A program made the position numbers and the translations under genes. A DNA stretch of 64,000 nt from Trichoplax adhaerens (Eukaryota; Animalia; Placozoa), in assembly GCF_000150275.1 (NCBI RefSeq), contig NW_002060962.1:248001-312000 (forward strand), read 5' to 3'. The notes below the pieces were generated by a model. It had not been told where the DNA came from and made no database searches. It saw nothing but the letters and a program-made list of their open reading frames with translations. Below, one piece after another: positions 14,797 to 32,914 of this stretch; the first letter of the stretch is position 1, and every line of letters starts with the position of its first letter.

Positions 14797-17700
14797 TTAT
14801 TTATTAATTGACCAAGATTGAGATTTATCAAAAGCTCTCTGGCCACCAGTAAGATCGCTTCCATATGATAGATGAGGTTCTTCAATGGGTAAATCTGGAT
14901 CGAATGATTGCTGTATTTGCTCTAGTGTTTTTCCTTTAGTCTCTGGCAAATAGTAATAGATGAAGAACTCGCTAGCGAGTGTACATCCTGCAAATAGCCA
15001 AAATCCACCTTGTTTAGTAAGACCCTTTTCAATATCTATAAAAAAGAAGACAACTAAAAAGCCACTTGTCCAGTTTAAGCAAGCAATTAAACTACTAGCA
15101 ATTCCTCGAGCTTTAGTTGGTAGCAATTCCGACATAAGCAACCAAGGTATAGCTGACCAGCCCAAAGCAAAAAACATCAAAAATAAAACAACGCTGACAA
15201 TAGCTAGCCAATCCAATTTTAATGGCGTACTTTCCTTTAATTGGAAGAAAAGACCGAAAAGACCACAGCTTATAACAATTCCAGCCCCTGATATCATGAG
15301 TAGTATTTTCCTACCAGCTCTATCAATAAATGGGACGGCTAGTATAGTAGCAAATAATTGTACGGCATTGGCTATAAGGTTAACCTACACACGCATGAAT
15401 AAATAGAATCAATCAAGAAACTACCGTATTTATTTAACTTCTATATTGTTTTATCAATCCTACCATTTGCAAATAGTATTCTATATTATAGTTAATTTAG
15501 CTACTTTACTGTAACCATTGGATATGAAATAATTACTTACAATTAAGCTATCTTTGAATCCTGCTTGATTAAATATTGATGTACAGTAGTAGTAAATAGC
15601 ATTAAATCCAGTAAATTGCTGGAGCAACATACAAGCTATAGCTATCATAAATGGTTTAACTAATGGAGGTCTAAACAATTCACAGAGATCCATCGTTGGC
15701 GTATTCTTATGCATTTCTTCAATTTCTGTTAGTTCAACATAGATATTGGCCTCATCACCATGTAGCCATCTGGTAAGATTTTAAAATTAAAGAGATAAAT
15801 TTAATATCTATTTTAATATTAACCGTACCTAACGATAGTGATTTCTCAGGTAGCTGTATTATAATAATGATATACTACTACTCTATGGTTATTATTATAG
15901 TTGTATTAATATATTTTTATAAAGTTTTAAGTATGATGCCGCTTGATTGAGTGCGACAGATGTGCGAAAGTATATGGGCTAGAAGAGCATAGGGTGATAA
16001 TTTTGTGACTTTCTGACAGTATTGTAACCCCAAAAAATAGACTTTTGCAATATATCTCGTAAAACAATTCAAATTGACTCATCTATAAAAGTTCTAGCGT
16101 ATAACATTAGTAAAATAGGATATGAGAAGATTGGATAATTTTCTTAGTTTTATTTATCTGGAATATAGCGTATTCGTTACCAATCCTAATTGATATTATC
16201 ACATAACTTTTCAAGAATATCTGATTTATGTCATTGATAACACTGTTAAAACACAATCCGAGTCACAGTTATTGCTGATATTAAGATTATAAGCCCATAG
16301 TTGTAATCAATTTATATTTGAAGCTAACTCATTAAATTGCAGCTATTGTACAATTGAAGTCTGTACCATATTTCTATCGCATATTAGTAAATATAACATA
16401 TGTAGGTTGAGTAAATTTATTTAGGAGATCTTTCGATCCTCATTGCTACTGTTTCAATCTTATCGGATTGATTTTTTTAATATAATACAAACAGTGCGAC
16501 CAATGTTATTAGAAAGGTAAATTCTCAATTGTATTCGGTTCATGTTCTAGTCTAACCGATACAAATCAAGTATACGCGTAAAACAGGTTATCTCTATTCT
16601 CCGATAGTAAAATAGGGTATTCAATATAATATCTTGTTCTATTGCTAGGAATGTGAGAGTCTCCAAACTTACCTTAAACAGTCAATAGCTTCTTTTAGAC
16701 GGCCTTGGCTGACTAGAAAACGTGGACTTTCTGGTAGTAGGATCATACCGATAGCAAGTACTAATATTGGAATTCCTGCTATTACAGCTAAATATCTCCA
16801 CTTGACCAATACGGATAGAGCGGCACAAGATAATGATCCAATGGCAATTAACAGAGAAGTTAGAAAAAGAAGACTTCCACGGATATCTGGGGTAGATATT
16901 TCTGCAAGGTAAATCTAAAAGTATTGATATGTATATCAGAGCAAATCTCGCAATATATGCTAATACAATACGAATTGTGATATAGAAAGTGTATGCGATA
17001 GTCAATATTAAAATGAAGACAATTGATAGTTAATAACTAAATAACGAACGCCTTTATGATTAGAGATATCAAATCCATACTATATCTTACTGGAACTGCC
17101 AGAGACGATATTCCAACCCCTATTCCACATAGTGTTCGTCCAACCAGTAAATGCCATACTGCTGTCGCGTATGCAATTAACAGCCAGCCAGCCATTGAAG
17201 GTATTGAAGACAAAATCAAGGTCGAACGTCGACCAAGTTGATCACTAATTTTGCCGCCAATTAAGGCACCACCTGCTGCACCAATAGCTAATAAAGACTT
17301 TGCAAGAAACGAATAAGTAATGTCAATTATAATTCGTATCTCTAATTGTTGCAGAAACGAATTAAGAGAGTTCTACTGTTTCGTCAGTAATAGACTATTT
17401 TAGATTTATCTATGATTTGAACCGTTTAATATTGTCGTTATTACATTATTAGTAGAAATTATAAATTAGAAAATAACGATCACGAAGATGCAATAAATGA
17501 GTTAAAATCCTAGCTTTCAGTAAATCTCAAAATTTCTCATGTTCGATTAATTCTATCGTAGTTTAAGTTGCGATTCAAAATTATCCTTAAATAACTACTT
17601 AATAGTTACGGAACAGGTTAGAATATATAGTAGCAGATTCAGTTGAAGCAATTCAACAAGGTTAAAATAACGACTCTAGTTGTAAGCATTTATGTCGAGT

Positions 17701-17996
17701 TGAAATTGTTATAGCATAAACATAGATTTAGATCGATTTCATCTATACGCGTATATTGGGGTTATCAACTCACTAACCGCGAATAAAGAAGTATTTCCAG
17801 ATGATAGATAGAGATTTCCAGCGCTCGGTATAGTCAACTGTGGTATGGTAGGAGAGGAATATTGCAAGCTATAACCTACTACAAAGGAGGCTATACAGGC
17901 GATAAAAGAAGCAAAATACAATTTGATCGATCTACATAAATGTTTACCATTATTACTAGAGGATTTATAACTATATTCGTCCTCTAAAAGCGACAT
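14797..17996 (-). CDS. Class III GLUT / Tret1-like sugar porter, copy B (~494 aa). Exons 17778-17996, 17091-17297, 16673-16914, 15541-15769, 14797-15384
   Basis: GRR, PESPRFL, QQFTGFN, GWSAIPWLLMSE and PETKGKTLE motifs. Internal exon sizes (207/242/229) match the paralogs; in frame. Confidence 0.92.
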
Positions 17997-20287
17997 TACT
18001 GACAAAAGAAGAACAGTATTAATTCAGTTGTTAATGTTTGTTTCAATTTTCAAAACAGTATAGAGAATAGATGGTATTATTTTATGGTCATTTAAAACAA
18101 GATTTGAACTTAAACTAAATCAGTGGTAAGAGTACGGTCTGTTATAGATTTTAATATGCTTTTACTATAGTATTGAATATTGAATAGGTCATATAGCATC
18201 GATTCAGTAACTCTGTATGAAGATATTACTTAACTTATCAATTATGATGTAAGCTATTCTGTCCTATTCGATATTATATTTGGTTTATTTATTTTGATTG
18301 TTTTATTTATTGAATTTTGTTGTATATAGTATATCATCATTAAAGGTAAGTTGCTATTTTTATGCTCTTGCACCGATATTTACGTAACTATTGATGCAAT
18401 CTACTATAGTATTTAGATATTTAGGTATAATTAATGTAAATACAATTTATAAAAAAGAGGCTTGTCCCTAATCTTCCCCCCTTGTAATCTTCATCTATAC
18501 AGTCCTTTTTATGTCACGAAGATTGAGAGCATAATGACGCATAAGTAGTTTATTTAATCAATTGGAAAATAAATTATTAAATAGTTGTTTTTATGGATTA
18601 TAGTAAAGTTAGTACCCATTCACGATACAGTTCTTAAATAAGTGAATTTAAAATAGATTAGGCCTGAAAATTAGTAATTATTGGGGTCTTTAATTTCTCG
18701 TAACAATTCATAATAAAGTAGAGTCGTGTCTTACTTGCGTTTAGCCTTTTCTTTTACTTTATTTAAATTACTGTCAGTACGATCACTAAAAACTAACAAC
18801 GTGTCCGCAGAAGAGAAATCGGTATCCGAACCGGGTGTAAAAGAGACTTCCTCTGTTATTGAGAACCATGCTGTACTGTTTCGCAGTCCATTCCATTATA
18901 CCAATACTAAGATTGATGATTACAATTATAATTAATTATCATAGGCTACATTAAACTGTGGCATGAACGGTATGTGAACAGCGATACAACATTATAGTGA
19001 GATAATACATATTACTATTTCATTCGCGATAGTAATCATGTTACTCCAATTAGATATACGTTGAGATGATTTTTTTCATTCTATAGCAGCGTTCCGATAT
19101 ATATTTTACTCATTCATTAATTGCCTTAGTTCTATTAAACTATTATATCCGTATGTAAGTTACAGGGTTGTTGTCATCATGTTATCGCTATTACTTTTAT
19201 GCACACTTGATTAAAACTCTTTCAAGATGATGCAACCGAGTATAAAGTTAATTAATATAGCATTATTCTGTATGAATCGAGTACTGTATCGTAATTTATT
19301 GCCCAATCCTATATTAGACATGTTATTGATTTTACTAGTCATTCCTTTTTTAGCTACAACTAAAAGTGTATTCAAAAAGGAGGGGGGAAAGGGCCAGTAA
19401 CATCTAGGACCATTTCTGCGGTGGTGATGCATGTGTAAAAGTTCAGAATCGCTGTTCTACTTGATTCCTCCTACCGATATCAGGGGTCAGTAAAATACCC
19501 TATGGCATGGTTATCACATTCTCTAATATCGAAGCTCGAGTATTTATCATACTAACTATACAGAATGGACATGACTGCAATAGCATAGCAATGATAGTGT
19601 GCAATGTATATTAGTTAGATGACTAGCAACTGCTCCGCTCGCTTAGCTTAGATCAGTAATCTTCTAAAATTGAAATTGCTTAATTGTTATAAAGTTACAT
19701 TACATAATTGTACGCACAGTATAAATATAGCCGACCCAAAGTTGAACGGTATTATTTTATTTTAGACATACTGTATAGATTAATATCCCACTACAGTACA
19801 CCCGATCGAAAATTCTAGTATTACAGTACTGAAATATTCATTTTACGTCGATTTATACTTACGCATATAGTATGCTGTATACTGTATATCTTCTTTATAC
19901 CTTACAAGTATTTGTAAATTGAATACTACTGTATTATTTTACTTTACAAGAATTAATTCAAACTACTATGGTTAAGCTTGAATTACTACAATCTTACACT
20001 GGGATATTTATGAACAGTTGATAGCTATTTCACTATGATAGGATGTAATGGCCTGTCTGTGTTCTGTACGTATATGTACGTCAGGGACTACTAAAAAAAT
20101 ACTGGAGAGGAACGGGACAACGAACGATCGCTGACGACTATACTAATAATTGAGAGGCTGATTCTTTTACTGGTCATTTCAACTGTATCGCATGTCTGTA
20201 AGACGGCAACTTCCAAATTGTCCTGATTGCCCGTTTGCTGTCTCCGTTTCCTTCTTTTTTCGTAGTCTGTAATGTCCGTATACGAGT

Positions 20288-20510
20288 GTTACGGCCAACA
20301 TCGGTAATCCCAGCGTTACCGGTAATGACGCCCGCGTTACTACGCCATTACCGGTAATGCTACCTTCTATTTCTTGGCCAATATCGGTAATGCTACTTTT
20401 GGTCTGGCCAGTATCGGTATTGGCCGCTGAATCTAACTGGCCATTACCGGTATTGGCCAGTTATTACTTGATCAATGTTGGTAATGCTACCTTTGGGCTG
20501 GCCATAAGCA
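20288..20510. repeat. GC-richer short tandem/palindromic repeat cluster (ggcca..atcggtaatgctac / attaccggtaat), present only in duplication unit 1
   Basis: About 8 variants of '(c)ggta(a/t)t' with 'ggcca' spacers, including the palindromes TTACCGGTAA and ATTACCGGTAAT. Confidence 0.7.
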
Positions 20511-21296
20511 AAGTCATTAGTCAATATCAGAACTATTCAGTAAACCTGAAGATGATCAGATCAATTTACTGTATTGCAGACTAGAGATTCTAGAAAGAGA
20601 GAGACTATTCAATAGTGTACACTGCTAGTCGACAGTGTACTAGTCCATTTTTGTTGCTGTTACTGCAAAATACTGCTGTCGATTTCCTATATTTTGCATC
20701 GATTCAACTTGCTCCATGACAGTGAAAATGAAATTGCTCAACTTCTACAATACAATATCATCCAGCTTGTTGATAGGCTGAACATCACCTGATCGATTTA
20801 CTATACATCACGCCATCTTTCTCTATCTGGCGTGAGCATTACCTACAGAGACGACTGTTTTAATGGTCAAAGGGTAAGCAAAAAAATCGCTTCGTAATGG
20901 TCTTATATTAGTCTGTGGTAGTAAAACCATGCTAAATAGACGCATGTAGTCAAAAATTGCATCGTAATGGTCCTTAATTAAATTAAATTAATCATTGGAG
21001 CTGGCGAGTGCGTACTACTGTAAGTATTGATTTGTGCACACTGCTCAGTAAAATAATCATTTTTGCAACTTGTACAGTAGATAGTATGTGTGTCCATTTT
21101 TAAGTTCATTGGGTCACAAAATTTGTAGGGATTGCAATCCCTTAATTTTCAAATTGCCCTTCAAACTCAATCAGCTGCCATGTCCTCCATTTTGCACTTT
21201 TTTTACAGTACTGTACTGTACTGTAATGCGGTGTGCACTGTACAGTACACTGTACAGTACAGTATTCAAGTCTATTCTAGTCCAGTACGGTCCGTA

Positions 21297-21351
21297 CCGG
21301 AACGGAACGTGACGCAACTTTCGTCATCGTGATGCAAATTATGTAAACAAA
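21297..21351 (+). promoter_or_regulatory. Candidate promoter motif cluster upstream of PhzF copy 1 (near-identical copy at 24994-25048)
   Basis: CCGGAA (ETS-like), TGACGCAA and TGATGCAA (ATF/C-EBP-like), ATGCAAAT (octamer), TTATGTAA (PAR-bZIP-like) and GTAAACAA (Forkhead) within 55 bp, just downstream of an ACAGT tract. Motif matches only. Confidence 0.35.
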
Positions 21352-21681
21352 GTGCATTTACTGTTCATACGAATTTCTTCTCTTCATGCAGTATACTGTG
21401 TACAGTATAGAGTCGGTAGTACCTTTCTGAACTGTACACTCAGTGTGGTGGCAACCCACGAATCATGTTGGCTGAAGACTCTGAAGAGCCTATTTAATTT
21501 GCAACCCCAACGCCGATTGATTCATTAGTCTCCAGTTCTCCACGACATTCATTGCAGGTAGATTATATATATCATTTACCTGATTACTTCGATTAAGGAG
21601 GAATCACAGCAAGAAATTAATCCGTGTTCCACCTTACCAAAGTTATACAACAACACTTGATTAACACTGACCTCAATCAAC

Positions 21682-22575
21682 ATGAAAAATATTCGCATTC
21701 ATCAACTTGATGCATTCTCAGCTCAATTATTTGGTGGCAATCCAGGAGCGGTTGTATTCGATGCCGATAATCTAACGGACAAAGATATGAAAAATATTGC
21801 TCGAGAAATGAATACTTCCACGACTGGTTATGTTTTAACAAGTCAGCGTGCCGATTTTCGCTTGCGTTATTTTACTCCTAGCGATGCAGAAATCACATTT
21901 TGTGGTCACGTAACTTTAGCAACATTGGCGATGATTGCTAGAGAGAAACGATTTGGTGCTGATCAGGGCATCGTTAAACAATACAACATTGAAATTAACG
22001 CTGGTTTATTCAAAGGTGAAATCGATTGGAGTGGTAATGAACCGATTATTTCTTTCTTTCCTCCCCCTATTAATCTTGATCCTGTACCTTTCAATCATGC
22101 ACAACTTGCTGAAGCACTAGCAATTAATTTAGATATTATCGATCAATCCAAACCAATCTTGATCGAAAGAACGAATCGCTATGTTTATTTTGCTATTAAA
22201 TCATTACAAGAACTAAAAGAGTTAAATGTCAATCAGGAGACTGCTAAAGCTTATGCCGAACAACATAATATTATACTTTATTGTGCATCAACACCTCATG
22301 GTGTAGATGAAAACAACCATGCACATAGTAGGGTGTTTGCTCCAGTAGGAATTGCAGAAGACCCAGTGACTGGATCATCTCAAGGTCCATTGACTGCTTA
22401 TATGGTTCAAAATGGAATGGTTCCACAATCATTAAGCAAAGTTAACACAGAACAAGGGGATTTTGTAGGTAGACCTGGACGTGCAACTGTTTATATACTT
22501 GGAAGAGACCCTATAGAGGTCAAAGTTTCCGGCCCTGCATTCCATGTATTTTCTGCTGATATGCAGATCCCTTAA
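21682..22575 (+). CDS. PhzF-family (phenazine biosynthesis-like, DAP-epimerase fold) protein, copy 1, 297 aa, intronless, catalytic Glu replaced by Thr
   Basis: Motifs DAF...GGNPGAV, RYFTP..EITFCGH, RVFAP.GIAEDPVTGS and EQG..VGRPG. The family NxSET motif reads NTSTT here. Confidence 0.92.
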   Translation: MKNIRIHQLDAFSAQLFGGNPGAVVFDADNLTDKDMKNIAREMNTSTTGYVLTSQRADFRLRYFTPSDAEITFCGHVTLATLAMIAREKRFGADQGIVKQYNIEINAGLFKGEIDWSGNEPIISFFPPPINLDPVPFNHAQLAEALAINLDIIDQSKPILIERTNRYVYFAIKSLQELKELNVNQETAKAYAEQHNIILYCASTPHGVDENNHAHSRVFAPVGIAEDPVTGSSQGPLTAYMVQNGMVPQSLSKVNTEQGDFVGRPGRATVYILGRDPIEVKVSGPAFHVFSADMQIP

Positions 22576-23799
22576 GCTGTACAGTATAGCTAGTACAGGC
22601 GAGCATCTATCAAGAATACCTTGTAATAGTAATCATATTACTTCAAATCTTTGGATAAACGTTGAGATAATTTTTTTCATTCTATAACGGCACTCCAATG
22701 TACTGTATATATATACATTCATATAATTGCCACGGCTCTATTAAACTATTACGAGTACTGTATATCCTTACATAAGTTATAGGATTGCCACCATGATGTT
22801 GTAGCTGTTACTTTATACACTTTTTATCGAAACTCTTTAAAGGTGATACAGCGGAGCTGAGCGTAAAGTTAATTTACATAGCATTTTACGCATCGATGTA
22901 CAGTAATTTAAATTAAACATAAGTGCTGCAACGATAGGCCCAAGTCTGTATTAGGCCTATTATTAATTCTAGTGGTCTTTCCTTTTAGCCACTACTGCCT
23001 CTAGGCAGTCTATCAGTAGTGATTACAAATAACTCGGTACACTCGATCGAAATTTTAGTATTACATTACAGAAATATTCATTTAACGTTGATTGATTTAT
23101 ACTTACTCATATATCTTCTTTATACCTAGCAAGTATCTATAATGAATATTACTGTATTATTTTACTTTACAAAATTACTATGGCTAAAGTTGAATGACTA
23201 CAATCACGACGTACATACAGTACAGTAGTTACACTGGGATATTTATAAACAGTTGATAGCCATTTCAACATGATAGTTGGATAATCCACCAAGAAGATCA
23301 ATCCGGACCGTATAAGAAATCAGAGAGACTCATAGAGTCAATGTAGCGATGTGTTAGCCTGTTGCGATTAACGTAGAACCTTAGAGTGTTGTACTGTTAA
23401 CTATAATTATATTATATCATACGCTGAAAGCGTTGCCTTATGTCGAGAAGAGGGATATGATATATACAGTAACACTGACCATATAAAATAGATCAGGACT
23501 ATTATAATTATACAGTATATGAAGCAATACAAAGCTATCGCGATACGGTACAAATCAATCTGGGGGTATCCCATATATTTCACCCGGTGCTATAAGACTG
23601 TTAAATAGTATTGCTTTTGCTATAATACATGCAGACGTTGCATAGCTATCTCGGAAATTCGATCTCGATCCTGTAGTGTATTTTTGCAATAAATCTTATC
23701 CTGAATCATCTATATATCGTGTTGATCGTTATCCTAGCGAGTTTGGACCTCGCGCATTACGCAATGTAGTAGTAAAAGATGAAAACGATATCAATATAG

Positions 23800-23967
23800 A
23801 TTTGATATGAAGAGGGTGAATTGAATACTTTGTAGTATTCAATCCTATACAGCTTACCGCGTAAAATTAATCTAATGCAGTAAAAAGTCTGTTTTGATAT
23901 TGCGAGGGTGGATTGAATATTTTGCAGTGTTTAATCCTATACAGCGTAAAATTAATTTAATGCGGTG
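23800..23967. repeat. Two ~90-bp direct repeats in the unit-2-specific spacer
   Basis: 'tttgatat...gagggtg(a/g)attgaata...aatcctatacagc...gtaaaattaat(c/t)taatgc' occurs twice. Confidence 0.7.
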
Positions 23968-25378
23968 CATTATCCGGTTTCGATTTGTTCGAGAGGGAGT
24001 AGTGCTCTTACTGATGCTGGTGCAGTGGTTCAACTTGATGTACTCTTCTACTATGCAAATTAGTTTTTATTTACTGAACTAGGAGTACAGTATAGTGACG
24101 GAATTATTATTGCAACTGTATTACTGGTAAAGTAGCAGGACCGTCGGTCTAGGGTACATCCTTCCAAAAAAGCTAGATGTGTTTATATGATTTCCTTCAT
24201 GATATTGAAATCGTCGCATAGTATCATCCTATTCAGTAAACCTGAAGATGATCAGATCAATTTACTGTATTGCAGACTAGAGATTCTAGAAAGAGAGAGA
24301 CTATTCAATAGTGTACACTGCTAGTCGACAGTGTACTAGTCCATTTTTGTTGCTGTTACTGCAAAATACTGCTGTCGATTTCCTATATTTTGCATCGATT
24401 CAACTTGCTCCATGACAGTGAAAATGAAATTGCTCAACTTATACAATGCAATATCATCCAGTTTGTTAATAGACTGAACATCACCTGATCGATTTACTAT
24501 ACATCACGCCATCTTTCTCTATCTGGCGTGAGCATTACCTACAGAGACGACTGTTTTAATGGTCAAAGGGTAAGCAAAAAATCGCTTCGTAATGGTCTAA
24601 TATTAGTCTGTGGTAGTAAAACCATGCTAAATAGACGCATGTAGTCAAAAATTGCATCGTAATGGTCCTTAATTAAATTAAATTAATCATTGGAGCTGGC
24701 TAGTGCGTACTACAGTAAGTATTGACTTGTGCACACTGCTCAGTAAAATAATCATTTTTGCAACTTGTACAGTAGATAGTATGTATGTCCATTTTTAAGT
24801 TCATTGGGTCACAAAATTTGTAGGGATTGCAATCCCTTAATTTTCAAATTGCCCTTCAAACTCAATCAGCTGCCATGTCCTCCATTTTGCACTTTTTTTA
24901 CAGTACTGTACTGTACTGTAATGCGGTATGCACTGTACACTGTACACTGTACAGTACAGTATTCAAGTCTATTCTAGTCCAGTACGGTCCGTACCGGAAC
25001 GGAACGTGACGCAACTTTTATCATCGTGATGCAAATTATGTAAACAAAGTGCATTTACTGTTCATACGAATTTCTTCTCTTCATGCAGTATACTGTGTAC
25101 AGTATAGAGTCGGTAGTACCTTTCTGAACTGTACACTCAGTGTGGTGGCAACCCACGAATCATGTTGGCTGAAGACTCTGAAGAGCCTATTTAATTTGCA
25201 ACCCCAACGCCGATTGATTCATTAGTCTCCAGTTCTCCACGACATTCATTGCAGGTAGATTATATATATCATTTACCTGATTACTTCGATTAAGGAGGAA
25301 TCAGAGCAAGAAATTAATCCGTGTTCCACCTTACCAAAGTTATACAACAACACTTGATTAACACTGACCTCAATCAAC

Positions 25379-26275
25379 ATGAAAAATATTCGCATTCATC
25401 AACTTGATGCATTCTCAGCTCAATTATTTGGTGGCAATCCAGGAGCGGTTGTATTCGATGCCGATAATCTAACGGACAAAGATATGAAGAACATTGCTCG
25501 AGAAATGAATATTTCTGAGACTGGTTATGTTTTAACAAGTCAACGTGCCGATTTTCGCTTGCGTTATTTTACTCCTAGCGATGCAGAAATCACATTTTGT
25601 GGTCACGTAACTTTAGCAACATTGGCTATGATTGCTAGAGAGAAACGATTTGGTGCTGATCAGGGCATCGTTAAACAATACAACATTGAAATTAACGCTG
25701 GTTTATTCAAAGGTGAAATCGATTGGAGTGGTAATGAACCGATTATTTCTTTCTTTCCTCCCCCTATTAATCTTGATCCTGTACCTTTCAATCATGCACA
25801 ACTTGCTGAAGCACTAGCAATTAATTTAGATATTATCGATCAATCCAAACCAATCTTGATCGAAAGAACGAATCGCTATGTTTATTTTGCTATTAAATCA
25901 TTACAAGAACTAAAAGAGTTAAATGTCAATCAAGAGACTGCTAAAGCTTATGCCGAACAACATAATATTATACTTTATTGTGCATCAACACCTCATGGTG
26001 TAGATGAAAACAACCATGCACATAGTAGGGTGTTTGCACCTTTAGTAGGAATTGCAGAAGACCCAGTGACTGGATCATCTCAAGGTCCATTGACTGCTTA
26101 TATGGTTCAAAATGGAATGGTTCCACAATCATTAAGCAAAGTTAACACAGAACAAGGGGATTTTGTAGGTAGACCTGGACGTGCAACTGTTTATATACTT
26201 GGAAGAGACCCTATAGAGGTCAAAGTTTCCGGCCCTGCATTCCATGTATTTTCTGCTGATATGCAGATACCTTAA
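25379..26275 (+). CDS. PhzF-family isomerase, copy 2, 298 aa, intronless, canonical active site
   Basis: DAF, GNP, EMNISETGY (Glu47), FCGH (Cys74/His76) and FAPLVGIAEDPVTGS (Asp228) all intact. Confidence 0.94.
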   Translation: MKNIRIHQLDAFSAQLFGGNPGAVVFDADNLTDKDMKNIAREMNISETGYVLTSQRADFRLRYFTPSDAEITFCGHVTLATLAMIAREKRFGADQGIVKQYNIEINAGLFKGEIDWSGNEPIISFFPPPINLDPVPFNHAQLAEALAINLDIIDQSKPILIERTNRYVYFAIKSLQELKELNVNQETAKAYAEQHNIILYCASTPHGVDENNHAHSRVFAPLVGIAEDPVTGSSQGPLTAYMVQNGMVPQSLSKVNTEQGDFVGRPGRATVYILGRDPIEVKVSGPAFHVFSADMQIP

Positions 26276-28393
26276 ACTATTGTAGAACATACGACTATCT
26301 ATCGAGAATGCATTTTGTAATTGGTAAGTCATTATTGAACGAGAAGAACTTATAACGTAATCTTTCTATATTTATTTATAAAAATAGCCGATAACGTCTT
26401 TACAATGCTATGTTTTATGTTAGGTGATAATCTGTCTTATTAATCTCTTCTTACTGTTATCTGAGATGAGTAGCAAGCATTTCTTCTCCTTCTTATGGTG
26501 TTCGTACTAACAAAAATGATACGATGTAAATCATAATCTAATTTCAACTTTAATTACCAACGCATAAATTTCGATCTCACTAATCCATTAATCATGCTTC
26601 CAATCGGATGAAATTAAATCTACCGAATGTATTATCTAAACTGTTATGGATGTGAAATAACAATAATGTTAATAAAAAAAGTAAATCCGTAAAAATGTGA
26701 GTATTATTATCGAAATTCGATACATTGATTGGCGACAATAGGCAAATTTTAAAATATTCAGAATGATAAGAAAAATGCCCTTGATGATATATTTAGACGA
26801 TATACTGTATAGAGTATGGCATCGGAGGGCTCAAGGTGGCCACAGGTCACTCAAATTCTAAATATTACTGGAGATATACATACAGTAAATAAAATGAAAT
26901 ACTAAGCGACATCTTTATAATCTTCGTTCAATAATGTAAAACAGAAGTGCTTTCAGTAGTTATCACTTAAAGAATCTAGCACTGTAGTTAACTTAGTATG
27001 CTGTTTGGCGATACATTACAAGAGTTGGCTCTTTAAACGCATCTGAAGACGCTACAAGTACGTCTTAAATGTTGTTAGTTATATACTCGTTATGATACAT
27101 TTTACTGTACCGGCTTTCTATTGCTTTAGTATGGCACACTCATCGTGTCTGATTGCAGCACTGAAACTCCCGATTTCTTTTTTACAATTATAAGATACTG
27201 ATAAGAAGTTATAGCAAGATTATAGTATATACGTAATGTCACAAAATACGTTGCTCTACGTCAATTCGATATGAATCAAATGTGATGATAACTTTTCGCT
27301 ATAAGTTTAAAATTTCCCTGTAAATTTTAGTATAGGATGTCGGCAGTTTACGTAATGAATTGAATGTCAAATTGACAGGTTGTGCTGAGTTTTAGTTGTC
27401 TCATCACTAAAACATGCAGATTAAAGTTTAGAATTTTCTTTAATGTGAACTATCACTGTTTGATAGTGTCCGAAAGAGTATTCTTAAGCTATCTGTCGAT
27501 AGCTTAAGAATTAAATATTTATACTTTTTATTTAATAGATAAAATCAAGATATAGTACACGTACCTTTTGAGCATTTATTATACTGATTACCATCCTTAA
27601 CTTATGACATAAAACGAAACCAGAAAATTCCATTATATTTTTGTAGTAAATTTAGTGAGTTATGATTAGACGATTGATAACCGTATCAAAATCAGCATAT
27701 GATAAAATAGCTTAATTTTACATTAGTAGAACGAAGAAATTATATGAATAGCTATCAATTCTGCTGAACTCTTGCATGGTTTTACCCGATGCTGCAAGTG
27801 CAGGTAGCCAAACTATAACTTTAAAGTCTTAAATAGCTAGCTATTCGATATCAGCTGTTTCTAACCCAATAGTCAAAAACTGACTACTATCTAAAACAGT
27901 TAATTTTGCCGAAATAATAATACGGTACTTCACCAGACATAGTATAGTGGAGTCATATATAGATACGTAAATATCGTGACACAGCAACCATATACTGTGT
28001 AATATAGAAAGAGAAAGCAGATAATCGAAATAATTTAATTAACCCGACATAAATAACGTAGTAAATATGAATAATAAATTGTTTCTATTTTTCAAAACTC
28101 AACTTACTATATTAATATACAATTTTAATCTTTTGTTGAAACATCATTTCTTAAATATTGCATAAGATTTCAAATTTCGACTACTAGCAATAATACTTGC
28201 CTTCAAATTATGGACGACTGTTGCAGTTGATATTGACAATTAGATAGCATGAAAATACCGAACTGAACATCGTACAGTATATAGAATTAAATCAGAATCG
28301 CTCTTATTTGACATCGGATATACTATCACGTAAGTAGAGACTACTGTCCTAAAAAATTTGTCATCTCTAATATAAGCCAATGAATAAGAAGTA

Positions 28394-31300
28394 TCATACC
28401 TCAGTTGCTCGACTGACAGATTTGTTACTGTCAAAGAAAATCTCAATTTCTTCTAATGTCTTACCTTTGGTCTCAGGTACAAAATAATATACAAATATTG
28501 CGGCGAGAAAGTTAAATCCAGAAAATATCCAAAGTACACCTTGTATAGAAATTATTTCACCTATAGGTAGAAATCCATAGCTGACTAGAAATCCCCCAGT
28601 CCAACCAATTCCGGCGCAGATACCGCCTACTTTACCGCGTACTCGTGATGGTAGGACTTCCGACATAACAAGATACGGTATTGAGCCCCATACACAATTA
28701 AAAGCCATAAAAAATGTAAATACACTAACCAACGCCAGCCAACTAGGGTTCAGAGATGCAGTATCAAGTAGGTGAAAGTAAAGCCCAAACGTAAAACTGC
28801 TCAACGACATCACTACGCTTCCACATGACAATAAAACCACCCTACCGAATCGGGCAGCTAGAAAATACCCGATAATGCTAGAAACTAGCTGAGATGTAGC
28901 AGCAATAAGATTTACCTAGGTAATTAGAGCAAGTCCATTATATGGAGTGATTAGTAAATATTACAGCATAAGGAAGGTAAATTTAACAAAGGTTAAGAAA
29001 GGTAAGACGCTAAACGCATAATGGTTACAATTGAAACAACACAAAATTTAGATAAAATGGTACATGAAAGTATAGTTTTAGATGTTTTCGGTACTTTATG
29101 AAGCAGTAGATTACGAGGGCACTTAAACGTATATCTATCGATAGCTACCTATAATCAGCTATATACACACTCTACATGTACATCATTTCTATAATATTAA
29201 AAGTCGTTAAATGGTACACTAACCACATCACTATCTTTAAATCCAGCTCTTTCGAAAATATAAGTGCAAAAGAACATGACAGGATTTATACCAGTAGCCT
29301 GTTGGAAAATAGTTAATGCTATACTGATTAAAAAAGGCTTTCGAATACTAGGGGAAAAAAGTTCTGAGTAGCCAACATTTTTCGTATTTTTGACGAGTTT
29401 TATTTCCTCTAGTTCATAATTAATATTAGCATCCGGTCCTCGTAACCATCTAAGGGTATAAAGTATAAATAATGATATAATAAATAGGAAATAATAAGCT
29501 TATTCATTCAAAATTTAGAGGCGCAGCACTAAAAAATTGTAATAAATGAGTTCCATTTGATAGTGATGTCAATCCATCGGAAAAAGAAGTGCTATTTATT
29601 TACCAAAATTGTTTACTCTATCAGAGCAATAATTAGCTGTAACTATAGGTTTGCCATTAAATCATGATTTAATTGTTATTCTATCTTATCAGAGCGGCAT
29701 CATAGGTATACTAGTAATGATGGCGCTAAGTCAATTGCAAGAAACCTAACCTTCGAAATGGAATATCAATTTCATCTTACGTGGTGAAGGTCTGATTTTA
29801 TATAGATGATACCGTAGTGGTATCTTTCATCTACAAGCCGAAATGTATAGTATAGTACCTTAATGTGTCAGAAGCTAACTCTTCATAGCCGTTGGATATC
29901 AGCCAACGAGGAGTTTCTGGCATAAACATCATGCTGAACGCCAGGATAGTAGCAATAACTTGACCTGCAACGGCTAAGAAATTCCAACTAACCAACATGC
30001 CTATAGCAGCACCAATGGTAGCACCAGCAGTCACTCCAACTTGAAGGAAAGCACCAAACATGCCACGTTTGGAAGCTGGTGCGATTTCAGAAAGATAAAC
30101 CTAAGTTAATTGCCCCAAAAATCGATTACCATCATTTATTACTAATAGTAGATAAAATTTACTTATTTTTTATCAATTCTTGTCAATGATTCCAATGTTT
30201 CGAAACGATATTTAATTTTAGATATCTAATAAAATTTATCTTAAGTGACAGAAACTAACAGAGCATGCAATGGATGCTATGCCAACGGAAATGCCGGTGA
30301 GGATTCGACCAATGTACAACGATGTGACACTCTGAGCGTACATGATTGCTACCCAACCAATCGATGAAGGTATGGATAAGAAAATTATAGCACTTTGTCG
30401 ACCATAAATATCTACAAGATAGCCACCAAAGAAACTTCCTATTAGAGCTCCCAGTAGCGGTAAAGCCTAAATTCATTATAATTATAATAATAATACAGAA
30501 ATTGAAATATTTTCATGGTGTAGTAGTACAGCATGTTGGACGTCGTTATTGATAGGTTTCACTGTGTAAGCCGAGTGGCCAACTAAGAGTACTATGAAAT
30601 GTAATTTTATTAAAAATAACTGTGATCCATAGCGCCTAAAAAACGCCAAAGTATTCTAACTTGTATTGCATTTTAGCATTCGCCACGACAATACATAGTG
30701 AATTAACAACAGTATCGTAGTGTGCAACTTTGTTTAGTTAACACCCTTCGACATTTACTCTATAATCAGCTGGAATACTTTACAATGAGTATTTTGTAAA
30801 ATTTGTTTTCACTTTTATAGGTATTGTTGTAATTTGTGATGCCATTTATTCTCCCGTTGTAATCCTATTACTTTCGCTAAGGCTTTGATTTAATAAATAG
30901 TAATAGATTGGTGTAAGCTGCAGTAAAGTAAAGATAACTATGATTGCAATGATAATGATTCTACTTTACTGGCCCGTACCCGTACGTAAATTATTATTTG
31001 CAGCATCGTCGTGTCGATAACTGTAGCAAAAATTTTAGCGTGCTTTACTCTATTTTTTTAAATAAGAAGATGAAAATATCACCCATCCAAAGATCACTCT
31101 TGTATTTCATCATTAAGTACAGTACAATCAGCACAATGGAGTATATGATATACCATCGTATAGACAATCATGCTCTATCATCATCAGGAGAACAATTTTA
31201 AAATACTGTACAGTCGATTTAGAGTGATTGATAAATCATTTTTGGAAGGCATTCTCAAACATGGAATAGTAAATAAGACATAAGCAATCTCAGATCAACA

Positions 31301-32548
31301 TGAATATTGATCCGTAATTTCAATATTGTTAAACTTGATTATGGATTTATCTTTCTGATGGTAGATAACGATAGGAGAATTGTTACAAAGATGTACGCGT
31401 ATAAAGAAGACGTAAGTGGTACAAAAGAACTTTTAATCTGACAGTGAATGATAAAACGATTTAATCATCAAAACTACAACTGCCAGGATATTCTGTCAGT
31501 ATTGCAAGTGATATTTTGAAGTCCACGATAGTAGTGCGATCCAGTAGTTTTCAATTACCATACACAAGTATGTCGATGAATCAAAATACTCATTGTTAAT
31601 AAGCAATTCAAGAAATAAACGACTATACAAACTATCAATAATGGAATAAGACATGTGTACAGTAGCCCTAACCATTTTGCATAAATTAACTTTGTACACT
31701 TGGTTTAATTAAGTTGTCCTACTGATACATTCATTACACATGGATTGATATTTCTGCCCCCCCCAAAAAATGAAGAAATCATTCAATCTCACGCGGCGCA
31801 AATCCAATTTAGGGGGATGATGCAGGACACCAATTTGATTTACGCCGCGTGAGATTGGACAAATCCAATTTACGGGGATGATGCATATTACTGTACATAT
31901 GATCGCAGGACACAAATTTGATTTGCACCGCGTGAGATTGGGCGAATTTCTTGATTTTTTTTTCAGATGTGTCAATACATGTCTAATTTCAAAAATGATG
32001 TATCAGCAGGACAGTTTAATTAACAGTAAATCAAGTTTACAAAGTAATTTATGCAAAACGGTTGGGGATAGCGTACAGTACTGGAGTACTACTGTACAAG
32101 TACTCTGTACTTTTAGGGTTTTTCATTCAGCATGTAGCCATCTGAATTCTTACGATTAAAACAGGACGTATATTACTAGTACACGCTAGTCATTCAAAGT
32201 ACAGCAAGCACAGAAAGTGAAATGTGTGAATATGTTACTTACACCAAATAATGAGGATGAATTCTCATCTAATCGCAGTGCACCCATGTGATTCGCCATC
32301 AATTGAGGAATAGCAGGAGCGGAATACTCAAACACAAATCCAAAATTGATCGTCCCTATCATTGCTATCAACGCTGCTAGAAATGTGTTCTTATTGGGCA
32401 TCGTTACTTGTTGCTTTTCTAAACCGGCATGATCGTAGCCAATGACGGTAATATTTCTCGATCGTGAAGTGGTAGAAGAATTGTGGCGAGCGCCTTCGCC
32501 ATTTGCTTTCATTTTTTCAGTATAGAAGTGGTTGCTTTCTTGACCCAT
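28394..32548 (-). CDS. Class III GLUT / Tret1-like sugar porter, copy C (~500 aa). Exons 32243-32548, 30260-30466, 29859-30100, 29224-29449, 28394-28915
   Basis: PETPRWL, QQATGIN, WGSIPYLVMSE and PETKGKTLEEIE motifs; conserved exon sizes; in frame. Start taken as the first true ATG (MGQESN). Confidence 0.9.
31656..32077. mobile_element. MITE-like foldback element (~420 bp, ~75-80 bp imperfect terminal inverted repeats) in intron 1 of transporter C
   Basis: Left arm 'tagccctaaccattttgcataaattaactttgtacacttgg...gtcctactgatacat' is the reverse complement of right arm 'atgtatcagcaggac...caagtttacaaagtaatttatgcaaaacggttggggata'. Internal inverted repeat aatctcacgcggcg / cgccgcgtgagatt. No coding capacity. 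Confidence 0.75.
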
Positions 32549-32914
32549 TGTCCTCCAAATGAGTACTGTATCAAGACTATCGTTGAGTATCTTGCCCAAT
32601 TCGATTACAGTAATGTAGTATTCACTGTAGATCTGCAATGCAAGTTGCGATGATGTTTTATCCAGGCTCTGGCTAAATTAGCCTATCGTAAAAGTTGAAA
32701 TCATTTTGATGATGTGGTGGAGTGAAATGGAATTCAATATTAAATATCGACAACATGCCACAGCAGCTAATACCTGGGTGTACCATACTGTACAGTGTAC
32801 AGTGTACAGTACAGTACTCAACGACTTCGTACTGTACACTGTACGGCCCAGATTGACGGCAGAGGTTCGTTTCGATTTTGTCCTAATCCGGCAGTAGACA
32901 GCAAAAATATGGAC

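Follow-up and report, generated by a model that had tools for sequence, protein, structure and literature searches.

A Tandem Pair of PhzF/YddE-like Genes

The window analyzed here, a stretch of 64,000 nucleotides from Trichoplax adhaerens (contig NW_002060962.1, positions 248,001 to 312,000), contains two PhzF/YddE-like genes arranged in tandem on the forward strand. Copy 1 (21682-22575, + strand) is an intact, intronless gene for a protein of 297 amino acids that has Thr45, carries Thr47 where the catalytic Glu is expected, and is without Leu222. Copy 2 (25379-26275, + strand) is likewise intact and encodes 298 amino acids with the complete Glu47/His76/Asp228 set. An initial annotation of the locus had described the frame of copy 1 as intact and the two proteins as differing only in I45T, E47T, and the loss of Leu222. 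The open reading frame of 297 amino acids at these coordinates and a base-by-base comparison bore out both statements.

At the DNA level, copy 1 and copy 2 are distinguished by 11 substitutions and one 3-bp deletion. Three of the 11 substitutions are non-synonymous: codon 45 is ACT in copy 1 and ATT in copy 2, and codon 47 is ACG and GAG, respectively, the latter accounting for two changes. The other eight are synonymous. The deletion removes Leu222 from copy 1 and adjoins a synonymous change (22338-22346, + strand; copy 2: 26035-26046). The segment from Arg217 to Asp228 comprises 12 residues in 196 of 205 homologs, and the Leu222 deletion and the synonymous change next to it are derived and private to copy 1.

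Both proteins were recognized by the profiles of the PhzF family. PF02567 (Pfam) matched copy 1 with an E-value of 8e-49 (167 bits) and copy 2 with 3e-52 (179 bits) at a cut-off of 27, and TIGR00654 (NCBIfam) gave 173 bits for copy 1 and 184 bits for copy 2 compared with a cut-off of 76. The YddE equivalog model NF007625, with its cut-off of 386, was not reached (151-170 bits). By sequence, the best solved relatives are Escherichia coli YddE and a PhzF-family protein from Bacillus anthracis (E about 5e-33). The features of phenazine PhzF proper were not found: identity to PhzF is ~27%, and the neighbors are sugar-transporter genes of the major facilitator superfamily (MFS), not a phz operon.

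Active Site, Structural Models, and Dimer

In a HMMER alignment to Pseudomonas PhzF (Protein Data Bank (PDB) 1T6K), residues 47, 45, 76, and 228 correspond to Glu45, Leu43, His74, and Asp208, respectively, and Leu222 adjoins Tyr203. The mapping of Glu47, His76, and Asp228 to PhzF Glu45, His74, and Asp208 that had been proposed initially thus holds. The segments Met41-Glu45 and Tyr203-Asp208 flank the active-site entrance of PhzF (PMC4586147). Since all three protein differences between copy 1 and copy 2 map to these segments, they evidently lie on the lips of the pocket, in agreement with their earlier assignment to active-site loops. Mutation of Glu45 in PhzF (E45A, E45Q, or E45D) gives inactive proteins, of which E45Q was crystallized in the open form with an inert enantiomer of a substrate analog bound (PMC5524880).

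The equivalent of Glu47 is kept in 189 of ~205 close homologs, and only ~10 non-placozoan sequences are without it. At the position of the catalytic Glu in the N-x-S-E-T motif, copy 2 has Glu, copy 1 has Thr, the paralogs L003 and L005 have Ala, and a group of metagenome relatives has Asn (paralogs and relatives are described below). His76, Asp228, and the Thr231-Gly232-Ser233 helix cap are retained in all placozoan copies, and the pocket residues besides Glu are all kept (Cys74, Gly75, His76, Glu227, Asp228, Thr231, Gly232, and Ser233). Cys74 and Thr231 are conserved throughout the subfamily. Because the members that keep the Glu have them equally, these two residues are no special mark of copy 1.

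AlphaFold2 modeling, in line with a suggestion of the initial annotation, returned an intact fold for both copies; copy 2 reached a predicted local distance difference test (pLDDT) score of 97.5 and copy 1 a score of 97.0. The sole dip in the copy 1 model, to 87, is at residues 221-230 around the deletion. The models of both copies have the two-domain diaminopimelate-epimerase-like fold. In a Foldseek search, the copy 2 model matched YddE, 3EDN, and PhzF with template modeling (TM) scores of 0.82-0.89. YddE and the B. anthracis protein were the best of these (0.86-0.89), PhzF entry 5IWE was among the matches, and DapF and proline-racemase-type enzymes followed.

A complex model of copy 1 with copy 2 scored 0.85, compared with 0.00 for the best control. 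In this test, which does not separate homodimer from heterodimer, the mark is attained by 51 of 78 solved complexes and by 2 of 108 mismatched pairs. The model runs agreed in 100% of contacts, and the partner pLDDT was at least 92. The modeled interface consists of residues 6-21, 38, and 41-45 and the C-terminal strand, with position 45 touching the partner. The complex model supports binding between copy 1 and copy 2, short of demonstrating it.

A Homogenized Block with an Older Active-site Patch

Copy 1 is part of a homogenized or duplicated unit with sharp ends, block A (20533-22584, + strand), which comprises 1.15 kb of upstream DNA and the coding sequence (CDS). Copy 2 is contained in the corresponding block B (24229-26284, + strand). 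The two blocks are 98.5% identical over 2048 nt (20533-22575 versus 24229-26275), including the 1.15 kb of non-coding upstream DNA. Their similarity ends no more than ~9 nt past the stop codon, and upstream of the blocks only short collinear pieces of 75-79% identity remain. The spacer between the blocks (22585-24228), made up of a short junction and a unit termed U2, is 75-79% similar, in collinear pieces, to 19035-20041. U1, the DNA upstream of block A (19035-20532), is its old, diverged counterpart. On these comparisons, the twins are near-identical through recent copying or gene conversion of a 2.05-kb block of promoter region and CDS.

The surroundings of the two blocks are unequal. Homology between the copy 2 region and the L003 locus extends from 23781 to 27643 and so includes both flanks of block B (23781-24228 and 26276-27643), whereas the homology of block A to that locus is limited to the block itself. 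Because only the flanks of copy 2 match those of L003, copy 2 occupies the older setting, and block A is either a secondary copy or an older copy that was converted. Both blocks contain ~750 bp that are missing at the L003 locus (20845-21592; counterpart 24541-25289). Inside this insertion lies a palindromic short repeat of TACTGTACAGTA-like units (21204-21265 and 24899-24955). Its k-mer depth is in the thousands and it has many joints in every run; the repeat is therefore considered to be a dispersed high-copy element.

The substitutions are not spread evenly over the coding sequence. Seven of the 11 fall into a 55-bp patch at the active site (21792-21846, + strand; copy 2: 25489-25543), a clustering with P about 6.5e-5 by simulation. 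In this patch, copy 1 has three differences from L003/L005 and seven from copy 2. Copy 1 and L003/L005 have in common AAA for Lys37, TCC for Ser46, and C as the middle base of codon 47; the same sites read AAG, TCT, and GAG in copy 2 and in Trichoplax sp. H2. The Asn-type contigs also have AAA at Lys37. Codon 47 is GAG (Glu) in copy 2, GCG (Ala) in the paralogs, and ACG (Thr) in copy 1, one step each. Outside the patch, the CDS of copy 1 has 4 differences from that of copy 2, compared with roughly 60 from that of L003. These patterns indicate that the 55-bp stretch has a different and older history than the young block around it and that the twins are mosaics. The mosaic would have arisen in either of two ways: a tract was imported from a Glu-less paralog and later changed at codons 45 and 47, or the patch is an unconverted island, in which case copy 1 would be an older Glu-less paralog overwritten by copy 2 on both sides of the patch.

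One argument of the initial annotation failed at this point. It had counted the two base changes needed for E-to-T among the signs against neutral decay, but they are no evidence of special selection on copy 1: the paralogs have GCG, one step from ACG, and share the flanking synonymous states with copy 1. The argument does not apply because the patch differs in its genealogy, and its source was not a pair of new point mutations.

The possibility that Glu47 of copy 2 is a reversion from Ala was also considered. Nucleotide parsimony was tied, with 5 steps each. Amino-acid parsimony required 3 changes for retention of Glu in copy 2 and 4 for reversion, with an outgroup root that sits on a long branch and is unreliable. 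Retention of Glu47 is the favored reading.

Paralogs and Origin of the Family

The genome (105.6 Mb), in which the window belongs to scaffold C1395, contains four loci of the family: the two in the window and two further ones, both Glu-less. L003, on scaffold C1397, is an intact paralog with 88% identity. The other (L004/L005) is a near-duplicate of L003 on the 9-kb scaffold C1283 and carries a 1-nt deletion in the CDS. The motif Ile-Ser-Glu-Thr of copy 2 corresponds to Asn-Ser-Ala-Thr in both L003 and L005. One paralog is TRIADDRAFT_60898 of T. adhaerens, and a 99% identical protein exists in Trichoplax sp. H2. When the C1283 locus (L005/L090, G000:C1283, 9.2 kb) was aligned to the C1397 locus (L003/L091), identity was 99% over 1.6 kb and the downstream repeats were rearranged; the Ala-type copy on C1283 may have arisen by very recent duplication, or it may reflect a haplotig or a sequencing error.

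Four metagenome proteins, 81-83% identical and located on short AT-rich contigs, read Ser-Asn-Thr and have a one-residue deletion. When their contigs were compared with Trichoplax, only the CDS aligned and the flanks did not. L003 and the Asn-type protein also passed the PhzF family profiles. Taken across the sequences compared, loss of the Glu (to Ala, Thr, or Asn) appears to be the majority state in the placozoan family, so that copy 2 is the exception and not copy 1.

Outside the placozoan group, the best matches among 1.8 billion representatives were at most 46% identical. In a maximum-likelihood tree, the placozoan sequences formed a clade (100/100) on a long stem inside a prokaryotic/metagenomic clade supported at 97/98. 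The enclosing clade holds proteins labeled Waddliaceae and Parachlamydiaceae, most rows being unnamed, and Chlamydiae-labeled proteins were among the closest named matches. The relatives that were sampled sit in gene-dense contexts of bacterial type. Because the placozoan genes nest among prokaryotic sequences, an old horizontal acquisition of the family from prokaryotes is likely. In a donor search of genome contigs, the best match listed was a Methanofastidiosum metagenome-assembled genome at 40% identity; no donor is claimed. The family is not among the 12 Trichoplax transfer candidates of PMC3641634. Literature searches found no publication linking Trichoplax with PhzF or phenazine biosynthesis, or PhzF with the term pseudoenzyme.

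The twin genes have no introns and a host-like GC content at third codon positions (0.23); the GC content of the window is 33.5%. The scaffold of the locus measures 1.2 Mb and has intron-containing sugar-transporter genes on either side of the pair; an independent assembly, that of H2, is collinear with this locus at 99%. Being set among host genes in two assemblies, the family is physically integrated in the host and is not a contaminant. The pair sits inside a tandem array of intron-bearing MFS sugar-transporter genes, all on the - strand (~14800-18000, 28390-32550, and from 35200 onward), with a sugar-transporter exon matching PF00083 at 28394-28840 (- strand).

Among the prokaryotic relatives, many of the closest homologs (P0009, P0014, P0016, P0022, P0078-P0095; L092; L094-L096) are fused to an N-terminal HTH_22/HTH_11 domain, one of them labeled Parachlamydiaceae. 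Others adjoin genes for an aminotransferase and a 2OG-Fe oxygenase, or for an FAD/BBE oxidase. These arrangements hint that the subfamily is tied to small-molecule sensing or to the chemistry of amino-acid-derived metabolites.

The Locus in Public Read Sets

Read evidence was taken from Logan contigs of public read sets. X1 and X3 are H1-like runs, X7 is H2-like DNA, and X19 is an RNA run under the organism label of X7; X1, X3, and X7 represent three studies and two strains. X7 has an H2-private letter at 21921, and X19 has H2-private letters at 26136 and 26142. A 1082-nt contig (22539-23620) runs from the end of copy 1, including the C at 22569 that is private to this copy, across the unique junction into the spacer; it was present with zero differences in X1, X3, and X7. 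A contig covering 23937-24258 joined the spacer to block B in the same three runs. The H2-like runs held 0.76-0.77 of the sampled words of a 6-kb query, which is excessive if 3.7 kb were missing. The tandem pair is present in H1-like and H2-like strains. The initial annotation had itself pointed out that long reads might reveal a single locus with its haplotypes assembled in tandem; the junction contigs from three studies speak for two loci.

In the Trichoplax sp. H2 assembly there is one gene at the locus, and 3.7 kb are absent, including the spacer, which is present in H2-like reads. This gene (L006, NOWV01000131.1, 8857-10897, compared with window 20533-26275) follows block A in its 5' part and switches to the B type at 21792. 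The H2-like run X7 contains the Thr-type site as well as the spacer and the copy 1 junction, and for this reason a collapse of the tandem pair into one chimeric gene in the H2 assembly is most likely. A true single copy in H2 produced by unequal crossing-over was dropped as an explanation on the same three observations. A polymorphic deletion in the sequenced H2 line is possible.

Thr-type letters were found in X7 at 21815, 21820, and 21846, at a depth of 17 compared with 15-19 for the spacer, i.e. approximately single-copy. In the RNA run X19, Thr-type letters were found at 21815 and 21820 at a depth of ~20, compared with ~40 for the Glu types and near zero for the spacer. A 619-nt contig of X19 ran from A-type upstream DNA into the CDS. 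The initial annotation had made its case depend on transcription of copy 1 and had recommended a search for E47T in another strain. As far as contigs can show, both points came out in its favor, with Thr-type contigs in an RNA library in which the spacer is near zero and with the Thr type in the H2-like X7.

The runs contained further sequence types at these sites. A Glu-type variant of window positions 25489-25519, with AAA for Lys37, AGC at codon 38 (Asn38Ser), and GAA for Glu47, was seen in X7 DNA and X19 RNA. Neither the window nor the H2 assembly has this variant, which could be an allele or a third copy; with it, the 30-bp stretch is unusually variable. A 410-nt contig of X1 (21707-22116) had the copy 1/2 backbone with AAT, GCG, and CAA at codons 45, 47, and 55 and ~4 times the single-copy depth; its probable origin is a bubble-popped path along k-mers that L003/L005 also have. 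As an explanation of this contig, a real Asn/Ala allele of copy 1 was set aside in favor of the bubble-popped path, which is the better account although not a proven one. The X3 contig at the Thr-type site was the L003 paralog itself, with 8 differences.

Constraint on the Glu-less Forms

The ratio of non-synonymous to synonymous substitution rates (dN/dS) was 0.09 for the twin copies; for copy 2 compared with L003 it was 0.38. Between the Trichoplax copies and the Asn type it was 0.12 at a synonymous divergence (dS) of about 0.9, and between two Asn-type sequences it was 0.27. With a clustering P of about 6e-5 and the dN/dS of 0.09, the statement of the initial annotation that the pattern does not look like neutral decay was confirmed.

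These values indicate that Glu-less proteins of the family have long been under constraint. Because the Glu-less forms appear to stay intact, to be transcribed, and to evolve under purifying selection, copy 1 would count among the maintained proteins of a Glu-less functional class, as opposed to a duplicate in decay. Copy 1 combines several properties expected of a pseudoenzyme, and its inactivity is predicted by analogy to the inactive E45A, E45Q, and E45D mutants of PhzF: the catalytic residue is lost (Thr47), the fold is kept, purifying selection is indicated (dN/dS 0.09-0.38), and expression is seen in the RNA contigs.

Proposed Function and Alternative Explanations

We consider it probable that the locus holds a tandem mosaic pair in which copy 1 is a maintained Glu-less member, most likely a ligand-binding, silent or much altered protomer. 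A placozoan ancestor would have acquired a prokaryotic PhzF/YddE-like gene long ago. The 2.05-kb block of promoter and CDS would recently have been copied or gene-converted between two positions, leaving the patch of copy 1 as an unconverted island or a short import. One or two further changes would have followed, together with the derived loss of one codon on the facing lip of the pocket. Because E45A, E45Q, and E45D of PhzF are inactive, copy 1 would be incapable of a Glu-dependent proton shuttle. It would bind a ligand and be catalytically silent or much altered, a role that is favored because Ala, Thr, and Asn share no catalytic chemistry while the ligand-binding residues are all kept. Copy 1 is expected to form homodimers, and heterodimers with copy 2, via the conserved N- and C-terminal interface that includes position 45. 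Copy 2 would supply the canonical isomerase/epimerase chemistry on a small carboxylate/amine substrate. A bolder proposal, possible but doubtful, is that the domesticated family has split into a Glu catalyst and selected Glu-less, non-catalytic forms and that selection resists gene conversion for the sake of an enzyme/pseudoenzyme heterodimer with position 45 in its interface.

Several points weigh against the favored explanation. The Logan contigs speak to presence and not to abundance, and the Thr type was not seen in the H1 runs X1 and X3, where only the paralog and probably bubble-popped contigs cover the site, so that these runs are uninformative. The changes specific to copy 1 are few (~4 synonymous, 2-3 non-synonymous, and 1 indel), and for this reason constraint on copy 1 alone is marginal (P about 0.05). 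A silent protomer is deduced from mutants of a PhzF that is only ~27% identical. We know of no biochemical function even for canonical YddE-type proteins. The dimer score, indifferent to heterodimer versus homodimer, may reflect recall of solved PhzF/YddE homodimers. The Asn-type contigs are probably placozoan, an origin assumed from 81-83% identity and AT-richness only. Finally, a simple import from present-day L003/L005 needs three extra changes in 55 bp.

The alternative that survives best, although we regard it as unlikely, is that copy 1 and the Glu-less paralogs are neofunctionalized enzymes that use another acid/base pair (Cys74/Thr231 or Asp228/His76) in a dehydratase- or racemase-like reaction. 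Purifying selection on the Glu-less forms over a dS of ~0.9 and the retention of all other pocket residues would fit such enzymes, and the fold neighbors include Cys/Cys epimerases and the Cys/Thr trans-3-hydroxy-L-proline dehydratase. The replacing residue varies by lineage (Thr, Ala, or Asn), and the pocket lip has been remodeled by the Leu222 deletion. However, Ala, Thr, and Asn have no chemistry in common that could replace a general base, and loss of the role fits this variation better. Moreover, Cys74 and Thr231 are equally conserved in the homologs that keep the Glu, and no activity is known for any member of the subfamily.

It is still less likely that constraint on copy 1, as a young and redundant duplicate, is relaxed and that the gene is heading toward a pseudogene, with the patch as a neutral by-product of ectopic conversion from a Glu-less paralog. 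The block is indeed young (about 1.2% divergence), the sister paralog on C1283 is already frameshifted, the one-codon deletion lowers the local model confidence to 87, and the changes specific to copy 1 are too few for a proof of constraint. Against this, the frame of copy 1 is intact, the Thr type is common to H1-like and H2-like strains and present in RNA contigs, and dN/dS between the copies is 0.09. In addition, the Glu-less relatives have been conserved over long times, and homogenization halted on both sides of exactly the functional patch.

An assembly artifact, in which two haplotypes or alleles of one locus were placed in tandem, would suit the block identity of 98.5%, near the H1-H2 divergence of ~1%, and the single gene in the H2 assembly, but it is highly improbable and was rejected as largely refuted by the zero-difference contigs of three studies that connect the end of copy 1 to the spacer across the junction and the spacer to block B, by the presence of ~0.77 of the 6-kb query words in H2-like runs, by the flanks, which are homologous to those of L003 for copy 2 and not for copy 1, and by the chimeric H2 gene (A-like 5', B-like 3'), which is what a collapsed repeat would give.

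The family offers a compact natural experiment. PhzF cannot do without the Glu, and in this small genome the four loci have Glu, Thr, or Ala at that position; two of the loci are neighbors with 99% identity. The pair would allow a cheap test both of the function of a Glu-less PhzF fold and of resistance to gene conversion at functional codons. The near-identity of the twins is, as far as the sequences indicate, the outcome of recent homogenization around an older active-site patch in a family of probably bacterial derivation. This bacterial-type family, apparently undescribed so far, joins the few likely cases of horizontal acquisition in Placozoa. A practical correction also follows: the public Trichoplax sp. 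H2 assembly appears to merge the tandem pair into one chimeric gene.

Comparison with Known Systems

The closest solved proteins, YddE (PDB 1QY9, 1QYA, and 1SDJ) and 3EDN, resemble copy 2 in length, in the DapF-like two-domain fold, and in the SET, CGH, and EDPVTG motifs. They are only about 30% identical to the placozoan proteins, whose genes are animal nuclear genes and reach 170 compared with the equivalog cut-off of 386. Unlike YddE and 3EDN, three of the four Trichoplax loci and the metagenome relatives are without the Glu. To our knowledge, no reaction has been assigned to YddE.

Pseudomonas PhzF, the trans-2,3-dihydro-3-hydroxyanthranilate isomerase, belongs to the same family and has the same fold, and copy 1 is the natural counterpart of its inactive E45 mutants. 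PhzF has Ala where the placozoan proteins have Cys74, the identity is ~27%, and a phenazine operon is absent at the Trichoplax locus. The placozoan substrate almost certainly differs from that of Pseudomonas PhzF. The eukaryotic proteins YHI9 of yeast (PDB 1YM5) and PBLD of vertebrates are members of the same superfamily but much weaker matches (E 3e-13 to YHI9). The placozoan genes group with bacterial YddE-like sequences and not with the ancestral eukaryotic lineage represented by YHI9 and PBLD.

Maintained dead-site paralogs are common in enzyme families. Pseudoenzyme paralogs are found beside active twins, and pairs of paralogs are homogenized by gene conversion except at selected sites. 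With copy 1 as the putative pseudoenzyme, the Trichoplax twins are like the pseudoenzyme pairs in the missing catalytic residue, the intact fold, the purifying selection, the tandem linkage, and the predicted dimer, and they are like the conversion-resistant pairs in having a sharp island of divergence within a converted block.

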